The translations under genes and the position numbers were made by a program. From sequence record NC_007623.1: a DNA stretch of 64,000 nucleotides, one strand, 5' to 3'. Below the pieces are notes generated by a model that worked only from the letters and a program-made list of their open reading frames with translations, searched no databases and had not been told where the DNA came from. Positions within the stretch are counted from its first letter, which is position 1. Every line of letters begins with the position of its first letter. This document shows positions 22,858 to 45,593 of the stretch, in pieces.

Positions 22858-22873
22858 CTCAAACCTATATTAC
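22858..22873 (+). promoter_or_regulatory. Putative phage early promoter (variant)
   Basis: CTCAAACCTATATTAC resembles the motif at 28602 and 41609 and lies upstream of a strong SD. Confidence 0.5.
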
Positions 22874-28601: not shown

Positions 28602-28618
28602 TTTTAAACCTACATTAT
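28602..28618 (+). promoter_or_regulatory. Phage early promoter motif
   Basis: TTTTAAACCTACATTAT, recalled as the EL-type conserved motif; a near-copy is at 41609. Confidence 0.7.
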
Positions 28619-33842: not shown

Positions 33843-33878
33843 ATACTTGATTTAATCGCGATTGAATTAAAACTATTA

Positions 33879-33910
33879 ACCTACCCTAGTGGATCTCCAC
33901 TAGGGTAGGT
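33879..33910 (+). terminator. Long-stem hairpin
   Basis: ACCTACCCTAGTGGA-TC-TCCACTAGGGTAGGT. Confidence 0.75.
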
Positions 33911-34040
33911 ATTCCTTATTGGTTTATTTATTTAACTTACAGTTATTTTCAGATCTAAATAATCAGGGTGAATAGCAACAATCCTATTAATTGTTAACTG
34001 TTTTACTCCCCATTTCCTACACACGAACGAGGATTCACAC

Positions 34041-34397
34041 ATGACCACTTCCAATGACAAAGCCAAAACCACCAACAAGTCCTTCACCGGTGAGCGCAAG
34101 GAAGGTTTCGCAGCCACAACTGTCGCCGGGATCGTCGGAGGCGTCCTGGGTGCCGCCGCCCATTTCAATGGCACCAAAAACATCGGTTCGTCCCTGATCG
34201 CCGGTGCGGCCGGTGTGACCGTCGGTTGGGCGGCGGGTCGTCTGGTGTCCCCTGTTCAACACCTCGGTACGCCAGCTACCATTCTGGGTAGTGCCTGGTC
34301 GGGTCTGCTCGGTGCGTCGATCGCCATCACCGCGGGTGAACTGGCTGGTTCGGTAATGGGTGCTGCCCAAGAAGCCCTGCCGAGCGCCGGCGAGTAA
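34041..34397 (+). CDS. Glycine-zipper membrane protein
   Basis: Three hydrophobic GxxxG-rich segments; SD GAGGA. Confidence 0.7.
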   Translation: MTTSNDKAKTTNKSFTGERKEGFAATTVAGIVGGVLGAAAHFNGTKNIGSSLIAGAAGVTVGWAAGRLVSPVQHLGTPATILGSAWSGLLGASIAITAGELAGSVMGAAQEALPSAGE

Positions 34398-34471
34398 GTT
34401 CTGCCCCAAGGAGAAGGTTATCCCTTCTCCTCTTCTTTTCAGTAACCCGCTCAGCCAGGAAGGTGTTTATT

Positions 34472-34636
34472 ATGAAATCCAGCGGCCTGCTTCTTCTGTG
34501 CGTTGGTGTTATGTTCGGCTTCTTGTTCGTGAACGCGAACTACGGCCAAGAGACTCAGGAAGATGAATCCCAAGAAGTGATCTTGGGACATCGTATTGCT
34601 CCTAACGGGCAAGAAATCCTGGTCTACCAACACTGA
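34472..34636 (+). CDS. Small single-pass membrane protein (54 aa, not in the ORF track)
   Basis: AGGAAGGTG SD; MKSSGLLLLCVGVMFGFLFVNANYGQETQEDESQEVILGHRIAPNGQEILVYQH; followed by a hairpin. Confidence 0.65.
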   Translation: MKSSGLLLLCVGVMFGFLFVNANYGQETQEDESQEVILGHRIAPNGQEILVYQH

Positions 34637-34647
34637 AGAACCCACCC

Positions 34648-34687
34648 CCCGCTTCCTTGTCCTGTTTAAGAGGGATGAGGAGGCGGG
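34648..34687 (+). terminator. Intrinsic terminator
   Basis: CCCGCTTCCTTGTCC / GGATGAGGAGGCGGG followed by TTCTTT. Confidence 0.6.
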
Positions 34688-34726
34688 TTCTTTACGTCTC
34701 TTTCATTTTTCACATAGGGAAATACC

Positions 34727-35158
34727 ATGCTAACGCCAGATGAAGCGAAGAAACGTCGGGTAAGAGTGGCTGAAATCTTTAGTCTGATTTCGGAGGCTAA
34801 TCAGCTTCTGGTTAAGGTCTCAGCCACCGCGAATGCTAACAGGAGTGAGGAGATGTTTGCGTTATCCATGTCTCTCCTGGAAGAGGCGGACACCAAGCTG
34901 AATGCGTACAAAAAGGAATTCCCCAATTGTCTCTCCTTGAAGTACAACCGTTGGATGCAAGTCGGGGTGAATTCTGAGGGTGGGGTGAGTAATAAACAAG
35001 GGCTTCCTCAACCCCCTCTCTTGACTGAAGACAATCAGCTCTCCCCTGAGTGGGTGACTTGGTACAGTCAGGTTATGGGGTATTCCCATTCCCATGCCTT
35101 GGAGGTGGGTGAACTTCTGTTGAATGCGTATCAGAACCTTCCTCCCTCCGAAGTGTAA
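34727..35158 (+). CDS. Hypothetical protein
   Basis: 143-aa ORF, SD AGGGA. Confidence 0.6.
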   Translation: MLTPDEAKKRRVRVAEIFSLISEANQLLVKVSATANANRSEEMFALSMSLLEEADTKLNAYKKEFPNCLSLKYNRWMQVGVNSEGGVSNKQGLPQPPLLTEDNQLSPEWVTWYSQVMGYSHSHALEVGELLLNAYQNLPPSEV

Positions 35159-35213
35159 AGGATTAACGGCAAACAGTCTCCCCCCTTAGGGGAGACTTTC
35201 TTGAGAAAGACGT

Positions 35214-35465
35214 ATGTTTAGAATGAATAAGGGTTGTTACCCTACCGGAATAAATCCTAATGGAAAGTTTCTGAGTCAAGAGGAATTGTGGAAACTCCCC
35301 AATGGGACTTATGTAACCTCCCCTTCGCACCATCATCACGTCTATCAACACGCCCGTCGTGTTGAAGTTCGAGATGGTCAATGCTGGCTGGTCACTGATC
35401 CCAGGTATATCTATTCCCTTGAAGACTTCTTTAAATACAACCTGCTCTACAGGAAAACCGCATGA
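35214..35465 (+). CDS. Hypothetical protein
   Basis: 83-aa ORF. Confidence 0.5.
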   Translation: MFRMNKGCYPTGINPNGKFLSQEELWKLPNGTYVTSPSHHHHVYQHARRVEVRDGQCWLVTDPRYIYSLEDFFKYNLLYRKTA

Positions 35466-35596
35466 AAAAGACCTGGATGTTGATGTCTCGTAGGAGACAT
35501 TCACCGAGCAGTATGGGATTGACCTAGGGAGTAAACTGGGCTCATTCATCGTTGATTAAAAACCTTTTGTCATTAATCCACTTATAGGACACCGTT

Positions 35597-36064
35597 ATGT
35601 CGAAGAAAATGCCGCCGGACTTCCGTAAACTGCACCTGGAAGCCTTGTACACCTACCTGAATGAAACCACGGGCGCGTGTGTCATCCTGGTTAACACCGA
35701 CGCCGGCCCTGAAGTGAAAGAAATCGGTCAAGGGAACCCCAGCGTCTTCTTCAACATCGGAGGGTTCGCGGTGAAGTACCTTCATTTCCATGAGGAGTAC
35801 GTTCATTTCGAATGCCGTTGCCAGGGGAAGGTATACGAGCTCTTCATCAAGTATGAAGATATCTTGGGTGTGCGGTATAACAGAGACTTGATTTACCTGG
35901 GTGGGGTGTGCCGAATAGTAGGTCAGGATGAAGACGGTCGGTTGATGCTCGCCCCTGGTGAAATCGCTCCTCCAGAACAGGATGATAAGAAAGAATCCTC
36001 CGTCCCCAAACCTCAGAACGGACACACCTCTCCGTTCAAGGTCATTGAAGGCGGTAAAGACTAA
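35597..36064 (+). CDS. sspB: SspB-like ClpXP protease adaptor
   Basis: 'LEALYTYL...VILVN...VFFNIGGFAVKYLHFHEEYVHFECRCQGKVYELFIKYEDILGV' aligns by eye with SspB (ALYEW...LVN...VLNISxxAVxxLxxxxxxxxFxxRFxG...VPxxAVLAI); disordered linker and C-terminal 'SPFKVIEGGKD'. Confidence 0.7.
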   Translation: MSKKMPPDFRKLHLEALYTYLNETTGACVILVNTDAGPEVKEIGQGNPSVFFNIGGFAVKYLHFHEEYVHFECRCQGKVYELFIKYEDILGVRYNRDLIYLGGVCRIVGQDEDGRLMLAPGEIAPPEQDDKKESSVPKPQNGHTSPFKVIEGGKD

Positions 36065-36083
36065 CCCCTCACTATCAATACCC

Positions 36084-36104
36084 CCGGTAGGGATAACCTA
36101 CCGG
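36084..36104 (+). terminator. Hairpin after the sspB-like gene
   Basis: CCGGTAGG-GATAA-CCTACCGG. Confidence 0.6.
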
Positions 36105-36189
36105 TGGTTAAATTATTCTGTTGAGTGTATCTAATACGTACATTGACCAGAATCATTTAGAGTTTCATAAACACCTGAGGTAATCCAAA

Positions 36190-36672
36190 ATGCTACCGAT
36201 TAAATCACGGCTACAAGAAATGATCATCAACGCCCAACCCCTCCCCGGCGTTGTGGATGACATTTACAAAGGCTACGAGGAAGTTAGGGTGTTCTTCTCC
36301 AACTTCGATCGGGTAATCACTCAACTCCCTTTCGATAAGGATATTCTCAATCACCTGCCCCGGGGTGAAGCCAAGACGGAGGACTTCTTCTTTCTCCACA
36401 CCATCTACCAGGAGCAGAACAAAGGCGCCATCCATGGCTTCGGAGAAGGGTATTCAGGGAACATTCGTTTCCGGATTAAGATCGTACGGAACACTAAAGG
36501 GGTCATTGCAGGGTTGACCGTAGGGACTCTGGGCTGGGGAATGAAAGATCTGGAACGGGATTTCAAGAACAAACACCTGTTGCATGGGGGTGTGGATTAC
36601 AAAGACGAACTCCTGGGTAAAGTGGTTCGTCATATTGAATTGGTCAAACTCTTCTACATCGAAGACATTTAA
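36190..36672 (+). CDS. Hypothetical protein
   Basis: 160 aa, SD GAGG. Confidence 0.6.
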   Translation: MLPIKSRLQEMIINAQPLPGVVDDIYKGYEEVRVFFSNFDRVITQLPFDKDILNHLPRGEAKTEDFFFLHTIYQEQNKGAIHGFGEGYSGNIRFRIKIVRNTKGVIAGLTVGTLGWGMKDLERDFKNKHLLHGGVDYKDELLGKVVRHIELVKLFYIEDI

Positions 36673-36697
36673 CATCTTTCAGAAGGAGTAACCCCCC

Positions 36698-37021
36698 ATG
36701 GTAACAGTTCGTAAGGAAGGTAAAGAACGGTCTCCTCTGTCGAGTCCCATCGTAGGCGAACGGGATTCCGTTGATTTCCATAACAACAAAGAACACCTGG
36801 AGAATGGGACGTATCGAGTTATCGAGTACGACGGGGAAATCAATTATTGTGTGTTAGACTATCTCGTTGAATCTTGGTACAGCGAGGAAGAACACATGGA
36901 ATTCCTCGATAATCTACACATGGACCATCTGGCCGAGAGAATAGGCGAGCCATACTGCGAAGACTTGGGAGAACCGTTCACCCAAGTCCTACATGACAAT
37001 TTCAGTGACCTTTTGACTTAA
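36698..37021 (+). CDS. Hypothetical acidic protein
   Basis: 107 aa, SD AAGGAG. Confidence 0.6.
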   Translation: MVTVRKEGKERSPLSSPIVGERDSVDFHNNKEHLENGTYRVIEYDGEINYCVLDYLVESWYSEEEHMEFLDNLHMDHLAERIGEPYCEDLGEPFTQVLHDNFSDLLT

Positions 37022-37038
37022 CAAGACGAGGGGGTGGT

Positions 37039-37824
37039 ATGAACACGTTTTACATCATTCAAGTCGACCAACGTTCCACTTCCCACCCGGGAACCATCAC
37101 TCAGTATTACGCCGAGGATCCCTCTTCTCGTGGTTATCCCGATTTCAGCAAGTCCTGGATGGACTGTAGCACTTTCCACAGCCTCGAAAGTGCTACTGAA
37201 GTCATTAACCGGATGCTCACTGATAAGAACACTCGCTTCGGTGATGGTTCGGTCTATCTTCCCCTCACATTCCGGATACTGCGTCGTGATTACAACGCAC
37301 CTGTTCCCGGTACGAAATACGAGTTCGATCTCTCCATTGTCGAGTTCTCCTACACCGATCCCTCCGACTTGAAAGTCAAAACAGTTGATCGCTGGGGAGT
37401 CGACTTCATATGGGGTGGAGGAGATAAACTCGCCAGGACTTTCTACCGCGTCGAAACGAATCCCGATCAACCCAACATGCCCTACTTGCCGGGTAAGAAT
37501 GAACCAAGTCTCTTCTACCCCAAGGCATTGGAGGGCGCTCACCCGTGGGTGTACTGGTATATCCGCAGTCATGAACTTGAGTTCACTTCCGCTTCAGTTA
37601 AAACTGCTTTGGAAGAGAAAGACAAGGTCATCGGTAAAATCAGTAACCAAAGTTCCAATGTGGAGCTTTACGACGAGATGTTTCCTAAAGCAGGCGACCG
37701 GGTTGCCGTGGGGGATCTAGTACTCCTGGGGGATGTTCTAGCTCTTCGTAATAAGAACTCCGATCTCACCCTGGAAGAAATCCACCAACAAAAATTGTCT
37801 CGTCGCGTTTCGAATAAACAATAA
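37039..37824 (+). CDS. Hypothetical protein, paralog of 38853..39659
   Basis: SD GAGGGG; colinear similarity with the 38853 protein. Confidence 0.7.
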   Translation: MNTFYIIQVDQRSTSHPGTITQYYAEDPSSRGYPDFSKSWMDCSTFHSLESATEVINRMLTDKNTRFGDGSVYLPLTFRILRRDYNAPVPGTKYEFDLSIVEFSYTDPSDLKVKTVDRWGVDFIWGGGDKLARTFYRVETNPDQPNMPYLPGKNEPSLFYPKALEGAHPWVYWYIRSHELEFTSASVKTALEEKDKVIGKISNQSSNVELYDEMFPKAGDRVAVGDLVLLGDVLALRNKNSDLTLEEIHQQKLSRRVSNKQ

Positions 37825-37893
37825 AGACAGTCAGTCAACAGAGGCCCTGTGAGGCCTCTGTTGGTATTTATTTCAGTAGTCAAGGAATTTGTA

Positions 37894-38358
37894 ATGGCTA
37901 GAAAAACCCTGTGTATGTTGATTCGCCATCACCAGTACGCGCTGGTAACCAATGACATCCAAAAGAGCGACTTCTTTTACACCTGCCCGTTTGAATCGAC
38001 CGTTGAAGGCCAACCGATTCTCTGTGCGGTGTTCTACAAGAAACCCAACCCCGAACGCATGAAAGCTGCGTATTCGCTGACGACTCTCCCCTGTCATTTG
38101 ACCCTTGAAGGATGGCAGAGCCTGATTGTGGATGCAGAACAACGCGCTATCCTCGTTACTCCCAGGCGGATCTATGATTTCCGTGGGGAGGAAATCAACG
38201 TGTGTAATGGAGAGAATAAGGGGTTTACCTTTGGAGCGGATGAATTCGTTCACCTTTTTGGTAAGTACCTCGACGTTAACGTTCCGTTGGGCGCTCTCTA
38301 CGCCGACAAGCAAATTGGTGAAGCATTTGAAGTTATCGCTGTAAAACCCCGTAACTAG
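37894..38358 (+). CDS. Hypothetical protein
   Basis: SD AAGGA before ATG 37894. Confidence 0.6.
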   Translation: MARKTLCMLIRHHQYALVTNDIQKSDFFYTCPFESTVEGQPILCAVFYKKPNPERMKAAYSLTTLPCHLTLEGWQSLIVDAEQRAILVTPRRIYDFRGEEINVCNGENKGFTFGADEFVHLFGKYLDVNVPLGALYADKQIGEAFEVIAVKPRN

Positions 38359-38433
38359 GAGGAGTGTTATGGGTACCCAAACGATCAGTTCGGCGATTAA
38401 CCCACAACCTTCCATTTCGTATTCGGGTGATTT

Positions 38434-38799
38434 ATGGAAAGAACGATCAAAGAAGTATTTGAATCGATGGCGAAGAATCTTCAAGATATCCAGCGCCTGA
38501 AGGGTCCTAACGCAAGGGTGTGTATTACCTTAGAGATTGACGGCGAAATAGTCGATTTCATCCTGCATCAGGGATATAAACATCAACCCACCCTCTTAAC
38601 TGCGATTATTATCTCAATCCGTATTCAAAATGTTGAAGGTATCCATCCCCAGGGAGTCATCATGATGTACAATGATGGCGAATTGTCGATGGGAATCTAC
38701 AAAGATGCTAAGTACGGCGGCGAAACGTTGGAAGGTGTGCTTCGTGTCGCCGAAGAATACATGAGTGAAGTCGAAGAAACCCCCCACACCCTCCATTGA
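38434..38799 (+). CDS. Hypothetical protein
   Basis: 121-aa ORF, SD GGTGA. Confidence 0.55.
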   Translation: MERTIKEVFESMAKNLQDIQRLKGPNARVCITLEIDGEIVDFILHQGYKHQPTLLTAIIISIRIQNVEGIHPQGVIMMYNDGELSMGIYKDAKYGGETLEGVLRVAEEYMSEVEETPHTLH

Positions 38800-38852
38800 T
38801 GGAATCCTCTACCCCGCGTCCTACAACCCTACTCCCTTAAAAGGAAGTCATC

Positions 38853-39659
38853 ATGTCTATTTCCTACATCATCCGGATTGATTCCCGTCTCAATAACCAA
38901 GGAGATGCCGTTACACGCTTCTATAACGTTCATGGTGGGGCGTTTGACCATCCCCGCTATATGACCCACTGGTACGACGCAAAAGCCTTCACAACGTTCC
39001 CTGAAGCCGTTAAAGTGGTTAAACGGATCATTGATGAGGAACCGGGGTTGTATTCCAAAGATCCTTACCGGGCGTTGTACGACCTCTGCTCCGCAGGGTT
39101 GGATCGCCCTATAGACCCGGATGGGTCCTACACCTTCGTGATTTACATTATCCGTTGCAATTCGGAGGATCCTTCGGACCCTCGAATGGAAGTGGTGGAT
39201 CGTTGGGATGTGGAGTTCTATCGGAATAAAACCCTACCCGACGGTCAGTTCAGTTCTATCGTATACCACGCGGAGGATAACCCCGAGGAGAGTGACCCCG
39301 GACGCTTCTACGTCCCAGGGGACAACGAACCCAGTGTCTTCTACTGTGACCGATTGGGTGGCGCGCATCCTTGGATCCATTGGTACATCATTACCCATGA
39401 GCTCGAATTCACCCACGAGAACATCGAATTCGCTAAGGATGAGAAAACCCGGGTAATCGAACAACTGCTGGAACAACAGAGCTGGGTGCCGTACTACAGT
39501 GAGAAATTTCCTCTCACTTCCCGAGAAATCGTTGTTCACCAACCCCTGCTGTTGGGGTATGTGTTGAGTAAGCGTAATGACAATCCTTCCCTGTCGTTGG
39601 AAGAGGTCCATTACCAAGAAATCACCCGGCGTAACACCAAACCGTCTGCTCATCACTGA
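38853..39659 (+). CDS. Hypothetical protein, paralog of 37039..37824
   Basis: SD AAGGA; shares 'VDRW', 'GAHPW..WYI..HELEFT' and 'LEE.H.Q...RR'. Confidence 0.7.
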   Translation: MSISYIIRIDSRLNNQGDAVTRFYNVHGGAFDHPRYMTHWYDAKAFTTFPEAVKVVKRIIDEEPGLYSKDPYRALYDLCSAGLDRPIDPDGSYTFVIYIIRCNSEDPSDPRMEVVDRWDVEFYRNKTLPDGQFSSIVYHAEDNPEESDPGRFYVPGDNEPSVFYCDRLGGAHPWIHWYIITHELEFTHENIEFAKDEKTRVIEQLLEQQSWVPYYSEKFPLTSREIVVHQPLLLGYVLSKRNDNPSLSLEEVHYQEITRRNTKPSAHH

Positions 39660-39692
39660 GCATTCCGTTAATCCTTATTCCACCGAGGGAGA

Positions 39693-40040
39693 ATGAACAT
39701 GAGAATGGTCCATTGGGCTCGATTGGTTAAAGAGTGCCTCCAACTTCAAGCCGTCAGCGATGATCGCTACCTGGGGGTCTGCTCAGGGTTGAGTTTGTTG
39801 TACCACAAGTACTTCCTGGCCAACGATCTCCCCCTCGAAGCCAACTACCCGGTGCTTACAGCCGCCTTTAAGGAACGGGTAGACCTGGGCCCACCGGCTA
39901 AGGAATCGGTTATGAGCGCTGAACACGCCCAAGAACTGGTTGAAACGGTGGAGGAGACCCTTCGTTACTACGTCAAGTTCTATGCGTGGGGTTGTAACCT
40001 GAAGGCTTCCTTCTGGGCGGAGGTAAAGGGTCAGCATTAA
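39693..40040 (+). CDS. Hypothetical protein
   Basis: 115 aa, SD GAGGGAG. Confidence 0.6.
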   Translation: MNMRMVHWARLVKECLQLQAVSDDRYLGVCSGLSLLYHKYFLANDLPLEANYPVLTAAFKERVDLGPPAKESVMSAEHAQELVETVEETLRYYVKFYAWGCNLKASFWAEVKGQH

Positions 40041-40097
40041 TCTTCCACATCCGTTCCAATCTATGTCGGGCACTCTTTTTCTAGAAGAGGTAACCCT

Positions 40098-40289
40098 ATG
40101 CCAAGTGTATCACGTAAACAAGCCAACCTTATGCGAGACGCCGCCCACAGCGCTGAGTTCGCTAAGAAGGTGGGTATCGATCACGAGGTGGCTAAGCATT
40201 GGTACGAGGAAGACAAGAAGGTGGGGTGGTTCGACCCCAGTTCCAATAAAGCGGAATCTTCGAAAAAGACCCCTTCCAAGTCCAGTTAG
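40098..40289 (+). CDS. Small basic phage protein ('MPSxSxKQxxxMxxAAH' type)
   Basis: SD GAGG; the N-terminal pattern is recalled from a widespread small phage protein family of unknown function. Confidence 0.6.
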   Translation: MPSVSRKQANLMRDAAHSAEFAKKVGIDHEVAKHWYEEDKKVGWFDPSSNKAESSKKTPSKSS

Positions 40290-40477
40290 TCGTTTCCGTA
40301 ATCTTTCCCTTGTAAGGGGTGCTCTCGTAACAGTAACCCTTAGCGGTTACTCGCAGTCGTCCGTGGCCGAGAGTATAAACAGTACAGGTCTATCTATTCC
40401 TTGTGATGGGGTGAATAGGTATGACAATGGCGAACGGACCCCTTTCGATTCAAGTGTAACACTGGAAGAAAAACACA

Positions 40478-40939
40478 ATGAATAAATACTGTGATCTTTA
40501 TGACGTGTTGGAACGGTTTGTTGGGCTGGTTAAACCTGTTGAATTTGGACTCCAACTGGGTTTTAAGGACCATCAGATTATCGGGGAGTTGAGATCTGTT
40601 GGTCTGCACTTGCCGCGTCAATCGGGTAAAACGACCCTGTTGTCCAAGTGGTGTTCGAAACACCCTGACGAAGTGTTCATCGTACACGGGTCTTCTCCAT
40701 GGTTAGAGGCTTTCAAAAGACTTTCAAACCTTCCCGAACTCCCCCCTTGGGTTTCGATCTCCAAAATACGAGACAACCAACCCTTGCTTACGGATCACTC
40801 GACCCTGAAGAAGATTAAATACGTGGTCGTCTATGGTTCGTCGGTTATTTTCTCCTACTGTGGACTCAAGCGTAAAGACTTCAACCAATGGGTGGCTGAC
40901 ACCTTTGGAACTGAAATCGTGGTGATCCATTTAGGTTAA
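40478..40939 (+). CDS. Small P-loop protein
   Basis: 'LHLPRQSGKTT' Walker A of the RQxGKT (terminase-like) type. Confidence 0.6.
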   Translation: MNKYCDLYDVLERFVGLVKPVEFGLQLGFKDHQIIGELRSVGLHLPRQSGKTTLLSKWCSKHPDEVFIVHGSSPWLEAFKRLSNLPELPPWVSISKIRDNQPLLTDHSTLKKIKYVVVYGSSVIFSYCGLKRKDFNQWVADTFGTEIVVIHLG

Positions 40940-40945
40940 GTTTAC

Positions 40946-41021
40946 TCCGTGATAGCTCAGTAGGTAGAGCAACTGTTTCGTAAACAGTAGGTCCCGGGTT
41001 CGAACCCTGGTCACGGAACCA
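40946..41021 (+). tRNA. trnT: tRNA-Thr(CGT)
   Basis: Complete cloverleaf: TCCGTGA/TCACGGA acceptor, GCTC/GAGC D-arm, ACTGT-TTCGTAA-ACAGT anticodon arm, CCGGG-TTCGAAC-CCTGG T-arm and encoded CCA. Confidence 0.95.
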
Positions 41022-41164
41022 AACATCGTTACCCCAAAGACTGGGACACACATGCTCGGCACCACCCTCCCCCAGATGCCCTGCGCCGTCCCGCTCCGCC
41101 AGCCATCCTGTTCTCTTCTCTCTTCCAGGGTGGACCGCGGCTTCTTGACAGGGGTGACGGTGTA

Positions 41165-41201
41165 CCTGTTCCCTACCTTTCTCAGAGGGGTGGGGAACAG
41201 G
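41165..41201 (+). terminator. Intrinsic terminator downstream of the tRNA
   Basis: CCTGTTCCCTACC / GGTGGGGAACAGG followed by ACCTTTTCTTT. Confidence 0.7.
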
Positions 41202-41238
41202 ACCTTTTCTTTATCCGCTATGTGCAGAGGATACCGTC

Positions 41239-41535
41239 ATGTCGTTCATTATAAAGGTCATGCGAGAGGACTGTGGGAATGGCACCTCCCGTGACTATGA
41301 AGGCATTATTGTGGGTCAGGGGGATCGGTTTGCTATCTCTTGGGATCCGCATAAAGAACAGCGGGAGCTCACGGTCGAGTTTGCTGATGGGAGAACCTTG
41401 CTCCGGGTGATTGATGGGGATCTTTACGTGGTGAATGCGGACGGTAAGACCATTTCCGGTACCCTCAAGAATAAGCCCTTGCTCCCCGGTACTTCCCACT
41501 CGAACCCCCGAGACAAACTCTCTTCTAAGCTCTAA
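41239..41535 (+). CDS. Hypothetical protein
   Basis: SD GAGGA; 'DLYVVNADGKTI' C-terminal motif. Confidence 0.6.
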   Translation: MSFIIKVMREDCGNGTSRDYEGIIVGQGDRFAISWDPHKEQRELTVEFADGRTLLRVIDGDLYVVNADGKTISGTLKNKPLLPGTSHSNPRDKLSSKL

Positions 41536-41556
41536 CCCGTAAACACCGTGTAAACA

Positions 41557-41589
41557 CCCTCCTACCTCCTTTACAGGGAGGTAGGAGGG
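41557..41589 (+). terminator. Hairpin terminator
   Basis: CCCTCCTACCTCC-TTTACAG-GGAGGTAGGAGGG. Confidence 0.75.
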
Positions 41590-41608
41590 TTTATTACGGT
41601 ATAGCGTA

Positions 41609-41625
41609 TTTTAAACCTAGATTAT
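41609..41625 (+). promoter_or_regulatory. Phage early promoter motif
   Basis: TTTTAAACCTAGATTAT, 16/17 identical to the 28602 motif and about 30 nt before ATG 41655. Confidence 0.7.
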
Positions 41626-41654
41626 TGATGCGTTAAGCCACGAGGAATAAATCA

Positions 41655-42191
41655 ATGTTTACTGAAAAACAAATGGAAGAACTTACCAGTGCTCGTAGAG
41701 AGGATGTGTGGAGTTATGACATATTTGAAATGACACTATTCCTGATGGAAACAGAGTGTGATGGTGGCGTCCCCTTCTTGAAACATATCATCATGTACAG
41801 TTTCAAGAAGATGCTCTCTGGAGAATCACTAGATCGTTATGCGATTGGACTGATGAATAAAATGATCTACGATACTGAAGGCCGTGATGCCAAGGGAATC
41901 GTAGAAAGGGTTGTGTTACAACGATTGACTGAAAGCGATATCCTGGAAGCCCACGCCTCCCTCATGATTTACATCACCAAAGCTAAGGAATTCCTGGAAG
42001 ACCTCAGTCAACGTTTCCCCGATCACTTCCAGAGTGTCAGCCGAGAAGAAACACCCAAAAAGTTCTGCTTTGCGAATAAACCGGCTCCGGAAGGGACGGT
42101 CAGGGAACTCGCCGCTAAATACGGTAAGTCGATCAGTGAAATCCGTAAACTCAAAGCAGCCGGTCGTCTTCATGAACTAGCACAGGGGTAA
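41655..42191 (+). CDS. Early protein with a C-terminal helix-turn-helix-like motif
   Basis: 'TVRELAAKYGKSISEIRKLK'. Confidence 0.6.
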   Translation: MFTEKQMEELTSARREDVWSYDIFEMTLFLMETECDGGVPFLKHIIMYSFKKMLSGESLDRYAIGLMNKMIYDTEGRDAKGIVERVVLQRLTESDILEAHASLMIYITKAKEFLEDLSQRFPDHFQSVSREETPKKFCFANKPAPEGTVRELAAKYGKSISEIRKLKAAGRLHELAQG

Positions 42192-42197
42192 TTGGTC

Positions 42198-42338
42198 ATG
42201 TTTTGGAAATTCACGTGTTACAACAAGGACACTTGGGAAGCCCCCCACCAAATGACCTTGATAGAAGCGGTCGAACTCTTTATGCGGGAAACCCAATACA
42301 GCCAGTGGGATATTCACTTCGTTGAGAATCTCCACTAA
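42198..42338 (+). CDS. Small hypothetical protein (46 aa, not in the ORF track)
   Basis: AGGGG SD; MFWKFTCYNKDTWEAPHQMTLIEAVELFMRETQYSQWDIHFVENLH fills the gap between two genes. Confidence 0.5.
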   Translation: MFWKFTCYNKDTWEAPHQMTLIEAVELFMRETQYSQWDIHFVENLH

Positions 42339-42377
42339 ACCGTTGTTAAACAATCTGTTAAACAGAAGGATAGCATT

Positions 42378-43136
42378 ATGAAACCCTTTCGAGTACCTGT
42401 TGGACGTCTCAGTAAAGATCGACTGGAATGGCTCATCCGTCATCGTAAAGAAAAGAAACGTGAATGTCCCTTTGGTGTTGCTCACTTCCCCAAAGGAACG
42501 ATCGCGGTATTCGAGTCCCCAACCCAGCGTTTTCTGAAAGAGGACGAACGTGAGTTTCCTGGTCAGCGGTACGCAACGTTCGAAGCGGAAGTGGAGGGTG
42601 TAGTCCCCAACGGACCGAACAGTTGGGTGGCTGTTCTAAAGGACCGTACGGCGATTAACATCGACTGGGCGCGCAAGATCATTAAACGGGGGGATGGTCC
42701 TCTCCGCGCCGCGGAGAATGACGTGGAGGACAGTCTGTGGAAAACCAGAGCCACCCACCCCCTGGATCCTGACACCCACCTTCCCATCAACAAACACCCC
42801 AACCACTACTACATCGACTCGATCTATCATGTTATCTACGGAAAATTGGAAGAGGTTAATAAAAATAACTTCGCCACTCATCTGATCGATGTGGATAAGT
42901 TGATTTCGCTGATGTGCGGTGATATCATTCGTCAGGCAACCTCCTGTGGTGATGGTGTTTACTGCCATTATCTCATCAGTAAGAAGAAGTTCCGCAAGAT
43001 CTTCAACCGTTGTCTGCCGCGTGCGCGCACCAGCCGGCGTAAAGAAGCTGAACGTCAGGCCAGGATCGAAGCATTCGAATACAACAGGTCGTTTGATGAC
43101 CGTTATGAAGACGATTACGACGACCCGGAGGTGTGA
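42378..43136 (+). CDS. Hypothetical protein
   Basis: 252 aa, SD AAGGA, acidic C-terminus. Confidence 0.65.
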   Translation: MKPFRVPVGRLSKDRLEWLIRHRKEKKRECPFGVAHFPKGTIAVFESPTQRFLKEDEREFPGQRYATFEAEVEGVVPNGPNSWVAVLKDRTAINIDWARKIIKRGDGPLRAAENDVEDSLWKTRATHPLDPDTHLPINKHPNHYYIDSIYHVIYGKLEEVNKNNFATHLIDVDKLISLMCGDIIRQATSCGDGVYCHYLISKKKFRKIFNRCLPRARTSRRKEAERQARIEAFEYNRSFDDRYEDDYDDPEV

Positions 43137-43370
43137 AGAAGTGTTAGAAGCCCCTTAACCTGAAGACCGCCCCACTCCGTCTTTAAAGGAATAACTCCTA
43201 CGTGAAGGAGGGGATTCACGTAAATGCCGTTAAATCACACGTGTAGTCCCCAACCCTTCTCTAAACGGATCTTCGGTAGAAGCCGAACGGTTTACTTAAT
43301 GGTCCGGTTAGCCTTTAAGCTACCGAGAGTGACAGATTAGATACCCCATCACTGTATTTTGGAGAAGGTT

Positions 43371-44354
43371 GTGAAACATAAAGAAACACCCTTTCAACGA
43401 GCCAGCAGCGGGCATGTCCTTCAGGTCGGTGACAACGGGTCTTGCCATGTGGGGGATCACGGGACCGCCATCGCTGGAAAAAATAGCGTCGCCACCGCTG
43501 CGAACAATGGACACGCTGTTTCTGGAGACTATGGGACAGCCATCGTTGAACGCTTTGGTATCGCCTCTGCCGGAAATAAAGGCATGGCTATCGCCGGAGA
43601 TTGCGGCAGTGCCACCGCTGGAGATCATGGTATCGCCACCGCGGGAAATTACAGTACGGCTACTGTCGGATACTTAGGTACTGCCACCGCCGGAAAGAAA
43701 GGGAAAGCTACCGCTGGAGATTGGGGGACTGCTATCGTTGGACTCGATGGCGTTGCGTCTGCTGGAAAGAATGGAAAGATCCACATCCAGTACTTCGACA
43801 GTGAAGCCAATCGTTACCGCACAGCAGTTGGATATATCGGTGAGGACGGTCTCGAACCTGGCGTTCCTTACCAATTGGATGAAAACCACGAGTTCGTAAA
43901 GGGAGACATTGCCATGACAAAATTCTCTACAGAGGGCCACGTGACTATACTCTTCCGAGGATTGGGTGTAGGTCTTATCAACGTCCAGGTCGTAAGGGTC
44001 ACTAAGGGTATAGGACATCCCAAACCCTTTTTCCATATTGAGGGATCTGAAGACAAGGGTTACCGTTTGCTTCATAACGGGAGTGAATGGATTGATCAGG
44101 TCTTTGAGGCTAAGAAAGCTGTACTCTTCATTGAGTCCCTCTACCCCCCTGTGACACCCGATAAAGAGACCGTGAAACTTACAGTGCCCGAGGATCAGCA
44201 AATCCTGGTTAAAGTACGTCGAGTGAATAAGCTGGCCTTGGATGCTGTTGTGTTCCACATTGACACCCTGGGTGGTGCGTATCAGGTATCCTATACCGAG
44301 CAACTGACCCCCGATCTCAATCAGTTGACTCATGTTGAGTTAGTGGTCATTTAA
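43371..44354 (+). CDS. Gly/Ala/Thr 8-residue repeat protein fused in frame to a second domain (internal start at 43914)
   Basis: About 10 repeats of the (T/S)AxAG(D/N)xG type, then 'YIGEDGLEPGVPYQLDENHEFV'; a second SD-ATG at 43914. Confidence 0.6.
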   Translation: MKHKETPFQRASSGHVLQVGDNGSCHVGDHGTAIAGKNSVATAANNGHAVSGDYGTAIVERFGIASAGNKGMAIAGDCGSATAGDHGIATAGNYSTATVGYLGTATAGKKGKATAGDWGTAIVGLDGVASAGKNGKIHIQYFDSEANRYRTAVGYIGEDGLEPGVPYQLDENHEFVKGDIAMTKFSTEGHVTILFRGLGVGLINVQVVRVTKGIGHPKPFFHIEGSEDKGYRLLHNGSEWIDQVFEAKKAVLFIESLYPPVTPDKETVKLTVPEDQQILVKVRRVNKLALDAVVFHIDTLGGAYQVSYTEQLTPDLNQLTHVELVVI

Positions 44355-44365
44355 GGACGTCAATC

Positions 44366-44611
44366 ATGGCTAAAAAGAACCTTAAGGTGTTCAAGACCCA
44401 CGGGGAATTCGATACGGAGGTGATTCGTCGTGCTCGACTTATCCTCGACGCCAGGGGTTACCGGGGGAAGATATGTGTGAACGCACTCGGTGAAAGTTCT
44501 GCGTGGAATAAAGCAGATCGCAATGAGGACGGTCATCGTCTGATCGACGACGACACTATCGCCGAAGTGGCTCGCTCGATGGTTTACGACACTCTCGATT
44601 ACGGAGAGTAA
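44366..44611 (+). CDS. Hypothetical protein
   Basis: 81 aa, SD AAGGA. Confidence 0.6.
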   Translation: MAKKNLKVFKTHGEFDTEVIRRARLILDARGYRGKICVNALGESSAWNKADRNEDGHRLIDDDTIAEVARSMVYDTLDYGE

Positions 44612-44617
44612 GTTTTA

Positions 44618-44972
44618 ACACGTTGACCGTATTATATACGGACAACATGTCGTTTTAATCCGCGTCTGCGGGTCCCGCCTGAACTTAAGGGTGATAAGGT
44701 GTGGTACTCGTCGAGTATGAGCTTGGCAAAACTCATACTCCGAACCCTATGGACGGTATAGCCGCTATCGTCAAGTCACACTGTTGAGCTATTGACCTGG
44801 ACTTCAGTCTCCTTTTCGGTGCTGTCGGCGGGAAGGTTCTCGGACGGTGAGGCGGCTTGTGAAGGTGCTAAACTAGCGCTGGTTGAACACCTAGCAAGTT
44901 AAGGGGAGGAGGGACAGCCATCGGCTCTAAGCAGATGGGTTCCTCCTCCCCTCGCTCCTTTTATTTTTTTTG
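44618..44972 (+). ncRNA. Candidate structured non-coding RNA ending in an intrinsic terminator
   Basis: No ORF of 60 aa or more; six or more helices seen by eye; long GC terminator stem (44903-44951) and U-tract. Confidence 0.5.
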
Positions 44973-45063
44973 TCTTAATACCGTGTTACTCGACCGGTTT
45001 CTAAAGGATACAGACTGTACGAATATTATGTCTTATCCCCCGACTTACCAAGAGGTTAAAGCG

Positions 45064-45540
45064 ATGTCGAAAAACAACGATCAGAAGAACCCCTCCACTC
45101 CTGAGGACGAGAAGGCTAAAGCGGTAACCACCCCTCCGGTGACTCCTCCCGCTCAGCCAGCTCCCGCTACCCCTCAAACGTCTCCCAAAGCCTCGAAAGA
45201 CGAGAGTGAAGAGGATAACCAGGACTTCGACAACATTCTGATCAATGTACTGTCGCTCTATGACAATGGGGAATTCAATAAAGAACTCCTTATTGAGATG
45301 GTGGAAGAAGTCCGTAAGGTTACCCGTCCGGGTCTTATCCCCGAAGAATACTACATCGATGTCGCCGTACAGCGTTATGTGGAATTCGCCAAACGCAAGA
45401 AGATCGACCTGAAAAACCTGTCGATCCTGGTGGGTAATCCTGAAACCTCGGTAGAACTGCGCTCGCTGAACTTCTACCGTGCAATGGAAGGCCTGGGTCC
45501 GACCTTCTTCATGCCGTACATCATTGAGAGTAAAGAGTAA
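45064..45540 (+). CDS. Hypothetical protein with a Pro/Thr-rich N-terminus
   Basis: SD GAGG before ATG 45064 (alternative start 45028); the track start at 44935 lies inside the terminator. Confidence 0.6.
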   Translation: MSKNNDQKNPSTPEDEKAKAVTTPPVTPPAQPAPATPQTSPKASKDESEEDNQDFDNILINVLSLYDNGEFNKELLIEMVEEVRKVTRPGLIPEEYYIDVAVQRYVEFAKRKKIDLKNLSILVGNPETSVELRSLNFYRAMEGLGPTFFMPYIIESKE

Positions 45541-45551
45541 CACTGAATAAA

Positions 45552-45593
45552 CCCCTAACCCCTAGCCCCTTTAACAGGGCTAGGGGTTAGGGG
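45552..45593. terminator. Bidirectional hairpin between convergent genes
   Basis: CCCCTAACCCCTAGCCC-CTTTAACA-GGGCTAGGGGTTAGGGG. Confidence 0.8.

Follow-up and report, generated by a model that had tools for sequence, protein, structure and literature searches.

A conserved non-coding element between gp101 and gp102 of Pseudomonas phage EL and its reading as a candidate 3′UTR-derived RNA

Introduction

Does the long gap between gp101 and gp102 of Pseudomonas phage EL (Elvirus, Chimalliviridae) hold an RNA, and if so, of what kind? An initial annotation of the window, by which we mean the whole 64,000-nt stretch of DNA analyzed here (window position = EL position minus 62000), had proposed a novel, large, possibly pseudoknotted RNA with its own terminator at this locus, which might act as a ribozyme, scaffold, decoy, or guide-like or IS-derived RNA, or else be the mRNA of a translationally locked small peptide, and had tentatively placed it in an RNA-centered island devoted to host manipulation. 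This interpretation stood in part: the non-coding character of the region, its lack of a known family, and its terminator were borne out, whereas the pseudoknot, the ribozyme, the peptide, and the RNA island were not. The locus is a real, conserved, and unannotated non-coding element. We tentatively, and with somewhat less than even confidence, read positions 44612–44972 as an Elvirus-specific conserved non-coding plus-strand RNA trailer of the gp098–gp101 transcription unit; it is a candidate for a 3′UTR-derived small RNA (sRNA) of that unit. The mapping of non-coding RNAs in nucleus-forming jumbo phages has only just begun: in the giant phages 201phi2-1 and phiKZ, ONT-cappable-seq has mapped sRNAs that are shorter than 250 nt, mostly derived from 5′UTRs, and mostly of unknown function (PMC11512511; bioRxiv 10.1101/2023.10.13.562163).

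Genomic Setting and Coding Potential

The element begins behind the stop codon of gp101 (44609–44611) and extends toward gp102 (Table 1). RefSeq places the start of gp102 at 44935 (201 aa), which falls within the terminator stem, and the extension 44935–45063 is broken by stops or frameshifts in seven of ten Elvirus genomes. Judged by this lack of conservation, the true start is ATG 45064; the non-coding gap therefore measures 452 nt (44612–45063) and exceeds every other gap in the annotated part of the window, its first 48.6 kb. The genes gp098–gp102 are assigned only to PHROGs of unknown function or to DUF4774, and family searches gave no assignment for gp102. Distant homologues of gp101 (~31% identity) occur in phiKZ-like phages, where no long non-coding stretch lies downstream of them.

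Table 1. Features of the gp101–gp102 region (window coordinates).
Feature	Position	Strand	Remarks
gp101	44366–44611	+	81 aa, phrog_26983; last gene of the upstream transcription unit
5′ hairpin	44618–44650	+	AT-rich near-palindrome of 33 nt, holds CCGTA/TACGG; directly after the gp101 stop
Core	44655–44900	+	246 nt, conserved, non-coding
Hairpin CCGC/GCGG	44660–44673		
Hairpin GAGTATGAG/CTCATACTC	44713–44721 / 44732–44740	+	9–12 bp; sole helix with covariation
Hairpin GACGGTA/TATCGTC	44752–44772	+	7 bp
Composite hairpin	44856–44898	+	
Intrinsic-terminator-like element	44902–44972	+	GC stem, spacer, U-run
TATGTC promoter-like motif	45022–45035	+	37 nt upstream of the gp102 ATG, downstream of the terminator
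gp102, proposed corrected start	45064–45540	+	158 aa; AAGAGG 8 nt before ATG 45064

No open reading frame (ORF) is conserved among the Elvirus sequences, and the gap is non-coding, in keeping with the initial annotation. The 14-codon ORF that had suggested a locked peptide is indeed present at 44717–44761, but the peptide itself found no support: The ORF takes three amino-acid changes in contig L012, its only ones, through substitutions that keep the hairpin at this site paired; its one synonymous change, A44731G, also closes a hairpin mismatch; and no Shine–Dalgarno sequence precedes it. A 36-aa ORF on the plus strand is frameshifted in phiRU and otherwise shows non-synonymous changes only, and a 34-aa ORF on the minus strand is stopped prematurely in three genomes. 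The variable sites are distributed over positions modulo 3 as 4, 4, and 5, that is, without codon periodicity. Stop-free pieces from all frames matched neither Pfam nor PHROG, on which grounds a decayed gene was rejected. Within the element, the records of MIZ-Pa99, HHBS8_1, and vB_PQ1 annotate “hypothetical proteins” of 34–36 aa (L002:1832-2102, L003:1832-2102, L004:1832-2102); since these small ORFs are cut short or frameshifted in other genomes, or change there only non-synonymously, they are probably spurious calls.

Terminator and Promoter Motifs

The GC stem and U-tract said to close the region are present on the plus strand at 44902–44972. A 14-bp GC-rich outer stem enclosing an inner hairpin (44902–44952) is followed, 6 nt past the stem, by a run of 6–11 U (44959–44972), which gives the GC-rich hairpin and subsequent U-run of an intrinsic terminator on the transcribed strand; the minus strand has no such U-run. 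Spacer and U-run vary in length among the genomes, and the stem changes C44918U and A44935G are G–U compatible on the plus strand. With its 6-nt spacer the terminator is non-canonical; a simple consensus scan did not pick it up. It shares with the EL terminators at 41563–41593 and 45552–45593 a purine-rich/pyrimidine-rich GC stem followed by T-rich sequence, but differs from them in its longer stem, its inner hairpin, its spacer before the U-run, and the ~290 nt of conserved non-coding sequence that precede it. Between 41563–41593 and 44902–44972 the plus strand holds no comparable hairpin-plus-U-run, and ahead of the unit, at 41608, the EL record annotates a promoter.

A promoter of the element's own was not found. 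The element lacks the EL promoter motif TTTAAACCTAnATTAT (28603, 41610), and k-mer enrichment in intergenic regions yielded no usable promoter model. The EL record lists both copies of this motif (28603–28618 and 41610–41625) as putative phage promoters, and a third, degenerate copy at 22858–22873 ends in TATATTAC, which is similar to the early-promoter core of phiKZ. On the minus strand, a sigma-70-like match (TTAAAA, 16-nt spacer, TATAAT; 10/12) at 44631–44658, inside the 5′ hairpin, points antisense into gp101.

Past the terminator, the TATGTC at EL 45027–45032 recurs 43–50 nt upstream of the starts of gp102 homologues in contigs L024, L025, and L028, where the gaps before these 34–35%-identical homologues measure 55–66 nt and lack the element; it also occurs 36 nt before gp094. 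The sites (40062; 13001; L024:1683-1748; L025:3946-4000; L028:632-693) lie 36–50 nt upstream of start codons. TATGTC is a candidate for the core of a promoter used by a phage RNA polymerase and is reminiscent of the phiKZ TATG late-promoter core. Since it is common to homologues without the element, it points to an independent gp102 promoter past the terminator, which in turn argues against a role of the element as leader or attenuator.

Sequence Constraint across Elvirus

The element is present in 13 Elvirus sequences, namely ten GenBank records (eight distinct genomes) and three Logan contigs (L012–L014); EL's own copy is also in IMG/VR. Nine or ten of the 13 were aligned, and densities of variable sites were computed from nine. 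The aligned elements are 93–100% identical, with 26 variable positions in 364 nt, and covariation power is therefore low. Within the core, three blocks of 39–47 nt (44655–44699, 44739–44785, and 44789–44827) are invariant, and 13 of the 246 positions (5.3%) are variable, compared with 37 of 155 four-fold sites in gp100 (24%), 6 of 32 in gp101 (19%), 9 of 64 in gp102 (14%), and 29 of 157 in gp103 (18%). The variability of the core is hence ~3–4 times below that of the four-fold sites in the four flanking genes (p = 2e-7 against the pooled sites of gp100, gp101, and gp102, of which 52 of 251 are variable; p = 4e-5 against gp103), and its diversity equals that of codon positions 1+2 in the flanking small genes. 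That the core is less variable than synonymous sites makes a functional RNA plausible. Another gap of the same island, 43137–43370, diverges at an approximately neutral rate (p up to 0.12) and is unalignable in L012. The genomes are mosaic, and some pairs differ more in the core than in the flanks: Between EL and phiRU, p is 0.024 in the core but pS is 0 in gp101. Genealogy could therefore account for part of the low diversity, and on this comparison we regard the element as moderately constrained.

Hairpins, Crossing Helices, and Folding Energy

All hairpins of the initial annotation were recovered (Table 1), as were both of its long-range complements, TCCCGCC (44673–79)/GGCGGGA (44827–33) and 44739–46/44835–44. 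Its observations of helices, ORF, and terminator were thus accurate, whereas neither the helices nor the fold of the core rise above chance. The 5′ hairpin, which is followed by GUUUUAAU, varies more than any other part of the gap: C44628G breaks one pair in five of ten genomes, C44627U yields a G–U pair, A44647G closes a C–A mismatch, and the subsequent U-run is not conserved (UUUU vs UAUU). This hairpin could act as a weak terminator or mark a processing site. The hairpin at 44713–44740 shows one compensatory change (A44720–U44733 to G–C, in contig L012), a change to G–U (C44738U), and, in six of ten genomes, the closure of a C–A mismatch by A44731G. Its neighbor at 44752–44772 is invariant in all genomes and therefore uninformative. 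The composite hairpin carries G–U-compatible changes, with A44889G keeping its pair as U–G, and one break, in phiRU, where G44864U, a 1-nt insertion, and A44887G partly disrupt it.

The two crossing helices, which had been taken for a pseudoknot, occur at chance level, and one of them is broken by natural variation: G44828A, found in phiRU, L012, and L014 (three of ten genomes), disrupts TCCCGCC/GGCGGGA without compensation. The helix 44739–46/44835–44 is invariant, its sole variable base falling in its 2-nt bulge, and is therefore uninformative. Moreover, the long-range pairs 44786–44841 and 44788–44839 of the minimum-energy fold are broken in up to half of the genomes, and the variable sites do not avoid predicted pairs (14 paired, 12 unpaired; Fisher p = 0.29).

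The folding energies agree with the claim of a large fold no better. The whole 364 nt reach z = −3.6, but because of the two terminal hairpins; the plus-strand core folds with −84 kcal/mol compared with −79.3 ± 5.1 for shuffles (z = −0.94), a stability that 28 of 200 shuffles also reach. A scan of the whole window in 240-nt segments gives the core an ordinary z of −1.5, the background being −0.87 ± 1.39. Perfect long-range helices of at least 7 bp number one, compared with 2.0 ± 1.3 in 300 dinucleotide shuffles, and local helices of at least 7 bp number two, compared with 0.64 expected, a count reached by 13% of shuffles. Support for a large RNA of a novel kind, be it structured or pseudoknotted, does not exceed chance. 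Elsewhere, the 240-nt segment 44415–44654 folds unusually well on the minus strand (z = −4.6); the plus-strand segment 36735–36974, inside the coding sequence of gp088, is among the strongest in the whole stretch (z = −5.3) and, unlike the other outliers, spans no intergenic gap.

Comparison with Known RNA Classes

As the initial annotation had supposed, the element matches no known family. At Rfam gathering thresholds, the whole window yielded only the tRNA-Thr at 40946–41018, ~3.6 kb from the element; a permissive search (E ≤ 10) of 44300–45300 on both strands gave only sub-threshold snoRNA/miRNA noise, and ARAGORN detected no tmRNA in the window. The Rfam 15 families without a match include tmRNA, RNase P, 6S, SRP, riboswitches, self-cleaving ribozymes, ROOL/GOLLD/OLE/HEARO/raiA, and RsmY/RsmZ. 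The same lack of an Rfam match speaks against the proposed ribozyme and against a guide-like or IS-derived RNA, alongside which there is also no transposase or nuclease gene; an omega or bridge RNA was rejected, as no TnpB, IscB, or IS110-type gene is adjacent. A group I intron was dismissed as well: The gp101 homologues stand alone in phiKZ-like phages and the gp102 homologues do so in L024 and L025, RF00028 has no match at E ≤ 10, and the spacing of the crossing helices misfits P3/P7. For a type III toxin–antitoxin system, tandem direct repeats of ~34–45 nt upstream of the terminator were not found, the sole direct repeat being one of 16 nt with 75% identity, its copies 91 nt apart. An RNA anti-CRISPR was set aside since what we took to be the I-F and I-E repeats of P. 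aeruginosa remained unmatched in the window at up to three mismatches.

Bacterial 3′UTR-derived small RNAs, such as CpxQ and SroC of enterobacteria, offer the closest anatomy. Like them, the element lies between a stop codon (44611) and an intrinsic terminator that would belong to the same transcription unit, of which it is the only strong plus-strand terminator; it ends in a stable hairpin with a U-tail and has, further upstream, a candidate cleavage site in AU-rich sequence. Its length of ~300 nt is several times that of typical members, to which it has no sequence relationship; the likeness is one of anatomy. With the sRNAs of giant phages the element shares the origin from a nucleus-forming jumbo phage, the non-coding character, and a terminator close to a gene boundary, but unlike them it has no counterpart outside Elvirus. 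One of those sRNAs has been reported as conserved in EL, upstream of the homologue of phiKZ gp182, which is another locus, and the giant-phage sRNAs described to date all map elsewhere.

Weighing the Possible Roles of the Element

We infer transcription, processing, and function of the element from its sequence, and the following scheme is accordingly worded as a proposal. The phage RNA polymerase would read past the gp101 stop codon, transcribe ~290 nt with four or five local hairpins, and halt at the GC-rich hairpin and U-run of 44902–44972, so that a stable 3′ end might protect the message. Cleavage in the AU-rich stretch at ~44651–44658, after the first hairpin, could free a stable RNA of ~300 nt in the manner of a 3′UTR-derived small RNA. 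The three invariant blocks would then act through their primary sequence and local hairpins, by RNA pairing or protein binding, a compact pseudoknotted fold playing no part. A bolder version of this proposal, which we consider improbable, holds that the core and the terminator form a discrete, stable ~300-nt RNA of a new, Elvirus-confined family that works in trans while the phage takes over its host, be it as a decoy, a sponge, or an antisense regulator, via the three invariant blocks, possibly with a tertiary fold missed by nearest-neighbor energy models.

A serious competitor, although on balance an unlikely one, is that the stretch has no RNA function at all, being a spacer or decayed gene remnant with an ordinary terminator whose low diversity stems from recombination history or from a role at the DNA level, for instance as a protein-binding site. 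The ordinary folding energy and chance-level long helices speak for it; mosaicism is pervasive, with many 100%-identical blocks nearby, genes come and go in the hyperplastic accessory island, and the 33-nt near-palindrome of the 5′ hairpin could be an operator. It has to contend, however, with a variable-site density 3–4 times below that of the four-fold sites on both sides, gp103 included, with the neutral divergence of 43137–43370, and with hairpins that carry one compensatory and several G–U-compatible changes; moreover, neither a protein remnant (Pfam, PHROG) nor iterons or tandem repeats are detectable in the element. At the opposite extreme, the element is not a large pseudoknotted ribozyme-like RNA, and we likewise see little prospect for the broader reading as a large, compact, possibly pseudoknotted non-coding RNA of a new class (ribozyme, scaffold, decoy). 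The missing Rfam match would make such an RNA new, three blocks are strongly conserved in primary sequence, and one crossing helix changes only in its bulge; against this stand the core z of −0.94, long-range helices at or below chance, the uncompensated break of the other crossing helix by G44828A, the minimum-energy pairs lost in up to half of the genomes, and a single covarying pair that belongs to a local hairpin.

A cis-acting, riboswitch-like leader or attenuator that governs terminator read-through into gp102 is also quite unlikely. The layout is reminiscent of attenuation, with a long structured RNA, a terminator, and a gene 92 nt downstream, and sRNAs arising by premature termination in 5′UTRs have been reported in 201phi2-1 (PMC11512511). 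Yet gp102 has its own TATGTC motif between terminator and start codon, conserved with jumbo-phage homologues whose short gaps lack the element; no riboswitch family matched, and no strong or convincing antiterminator pairing competes with the 14-bp GC stem, for which reasons we rejected this candidate. Hardly any credence can be given to a small-peptide mRNA, whether for the 14-codon ORF or for the annotated ones of 34–36 aa: The ORFs exist, and two are called as hypothetical proteins in three records, but the amino-acid changes in L012, the missing Shine–Dalgarno sequence, the frameshift in phiRU, the premature stops in three genomes, and the lack of codon periodicity all stand against it. 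Returning to the trailer reading, its core is a non-coding block of 250 nt that varies 3–4 times less than silent sites, well defined enough to be deleted in EL and mapped at the transcript level; if a stable RNA is made, a genus-specific regulatory RNA would be added to the host-takeover island of EL. The element is a modest lead and no evidence for a new class of ribozyme-like RNA.

Distribution and the Surrounding Accessory Island

The search for relatives in other jumbo phages ended within the genus. Blastn against 50,697 phage records returned only the ten Elvirus records, even at E ≤ 5, with one place per genome, and neither blastn nor nhmmer detected a paralogue within the window; the “second places” in some genomes are most likely due to the perfect palindrome of hairpin 44713–44740. 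IMG/VR contains no carrier besides EL itself, and the first patterns, exact 20–22-mers from the invariant blocks, matched nothing in JGI metagenomes or GTDB genomes. A pattern with 19 specified bases had six matches, which were rejected as relatives because the similarity ends at the seed. Synteny followed via gp101 (phiKZ-like phages), gp103 (RisingSun, Miami), and gp102 (L024–L028) led to no relative with the element, either. Within phage records, IMG/VR, and the metagenome and GTDB scans, the element thus appears in Elvirus only.

Synteny accounts for this absence. Erwinia phage RisingSun and Klebsiella phage Miami carry the block of major head protein, polymerase, and gp081 homologue close to the gp103 homologue, with only one small gene between the gp081 and gp103 homologues in RisingSun and four in Miami; EL gp082–gp102 (33843–45540), which includes the tRNA-Thr and the SspB-like gp086, therefore forms an accessory island specific to this lineage. 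Homologues of gp102 with 31–41% identity exist outside Elvirus, and in L025 (238 kb) and L024 (4.5 kb) such a homologue adjoins that of gp103. The notion of an RNA-centered island dissolves on this evidence into a block of Elvirus-specific accessory genes, and the stretch 43137–43370, which had been counted among its RNA elements (as the element at 43140), does not, to judge from its nearly neutral divergence, behave like a conserved non-coding RNA. Within the same island, gp100 (43371–44354) is a DUF4774 repeat protein whose N-terminal half is 44–48% identical to Bbp36 of Bordetella phage BPP-1, and the match spans the region annotated as “variable region 2” in those phages.
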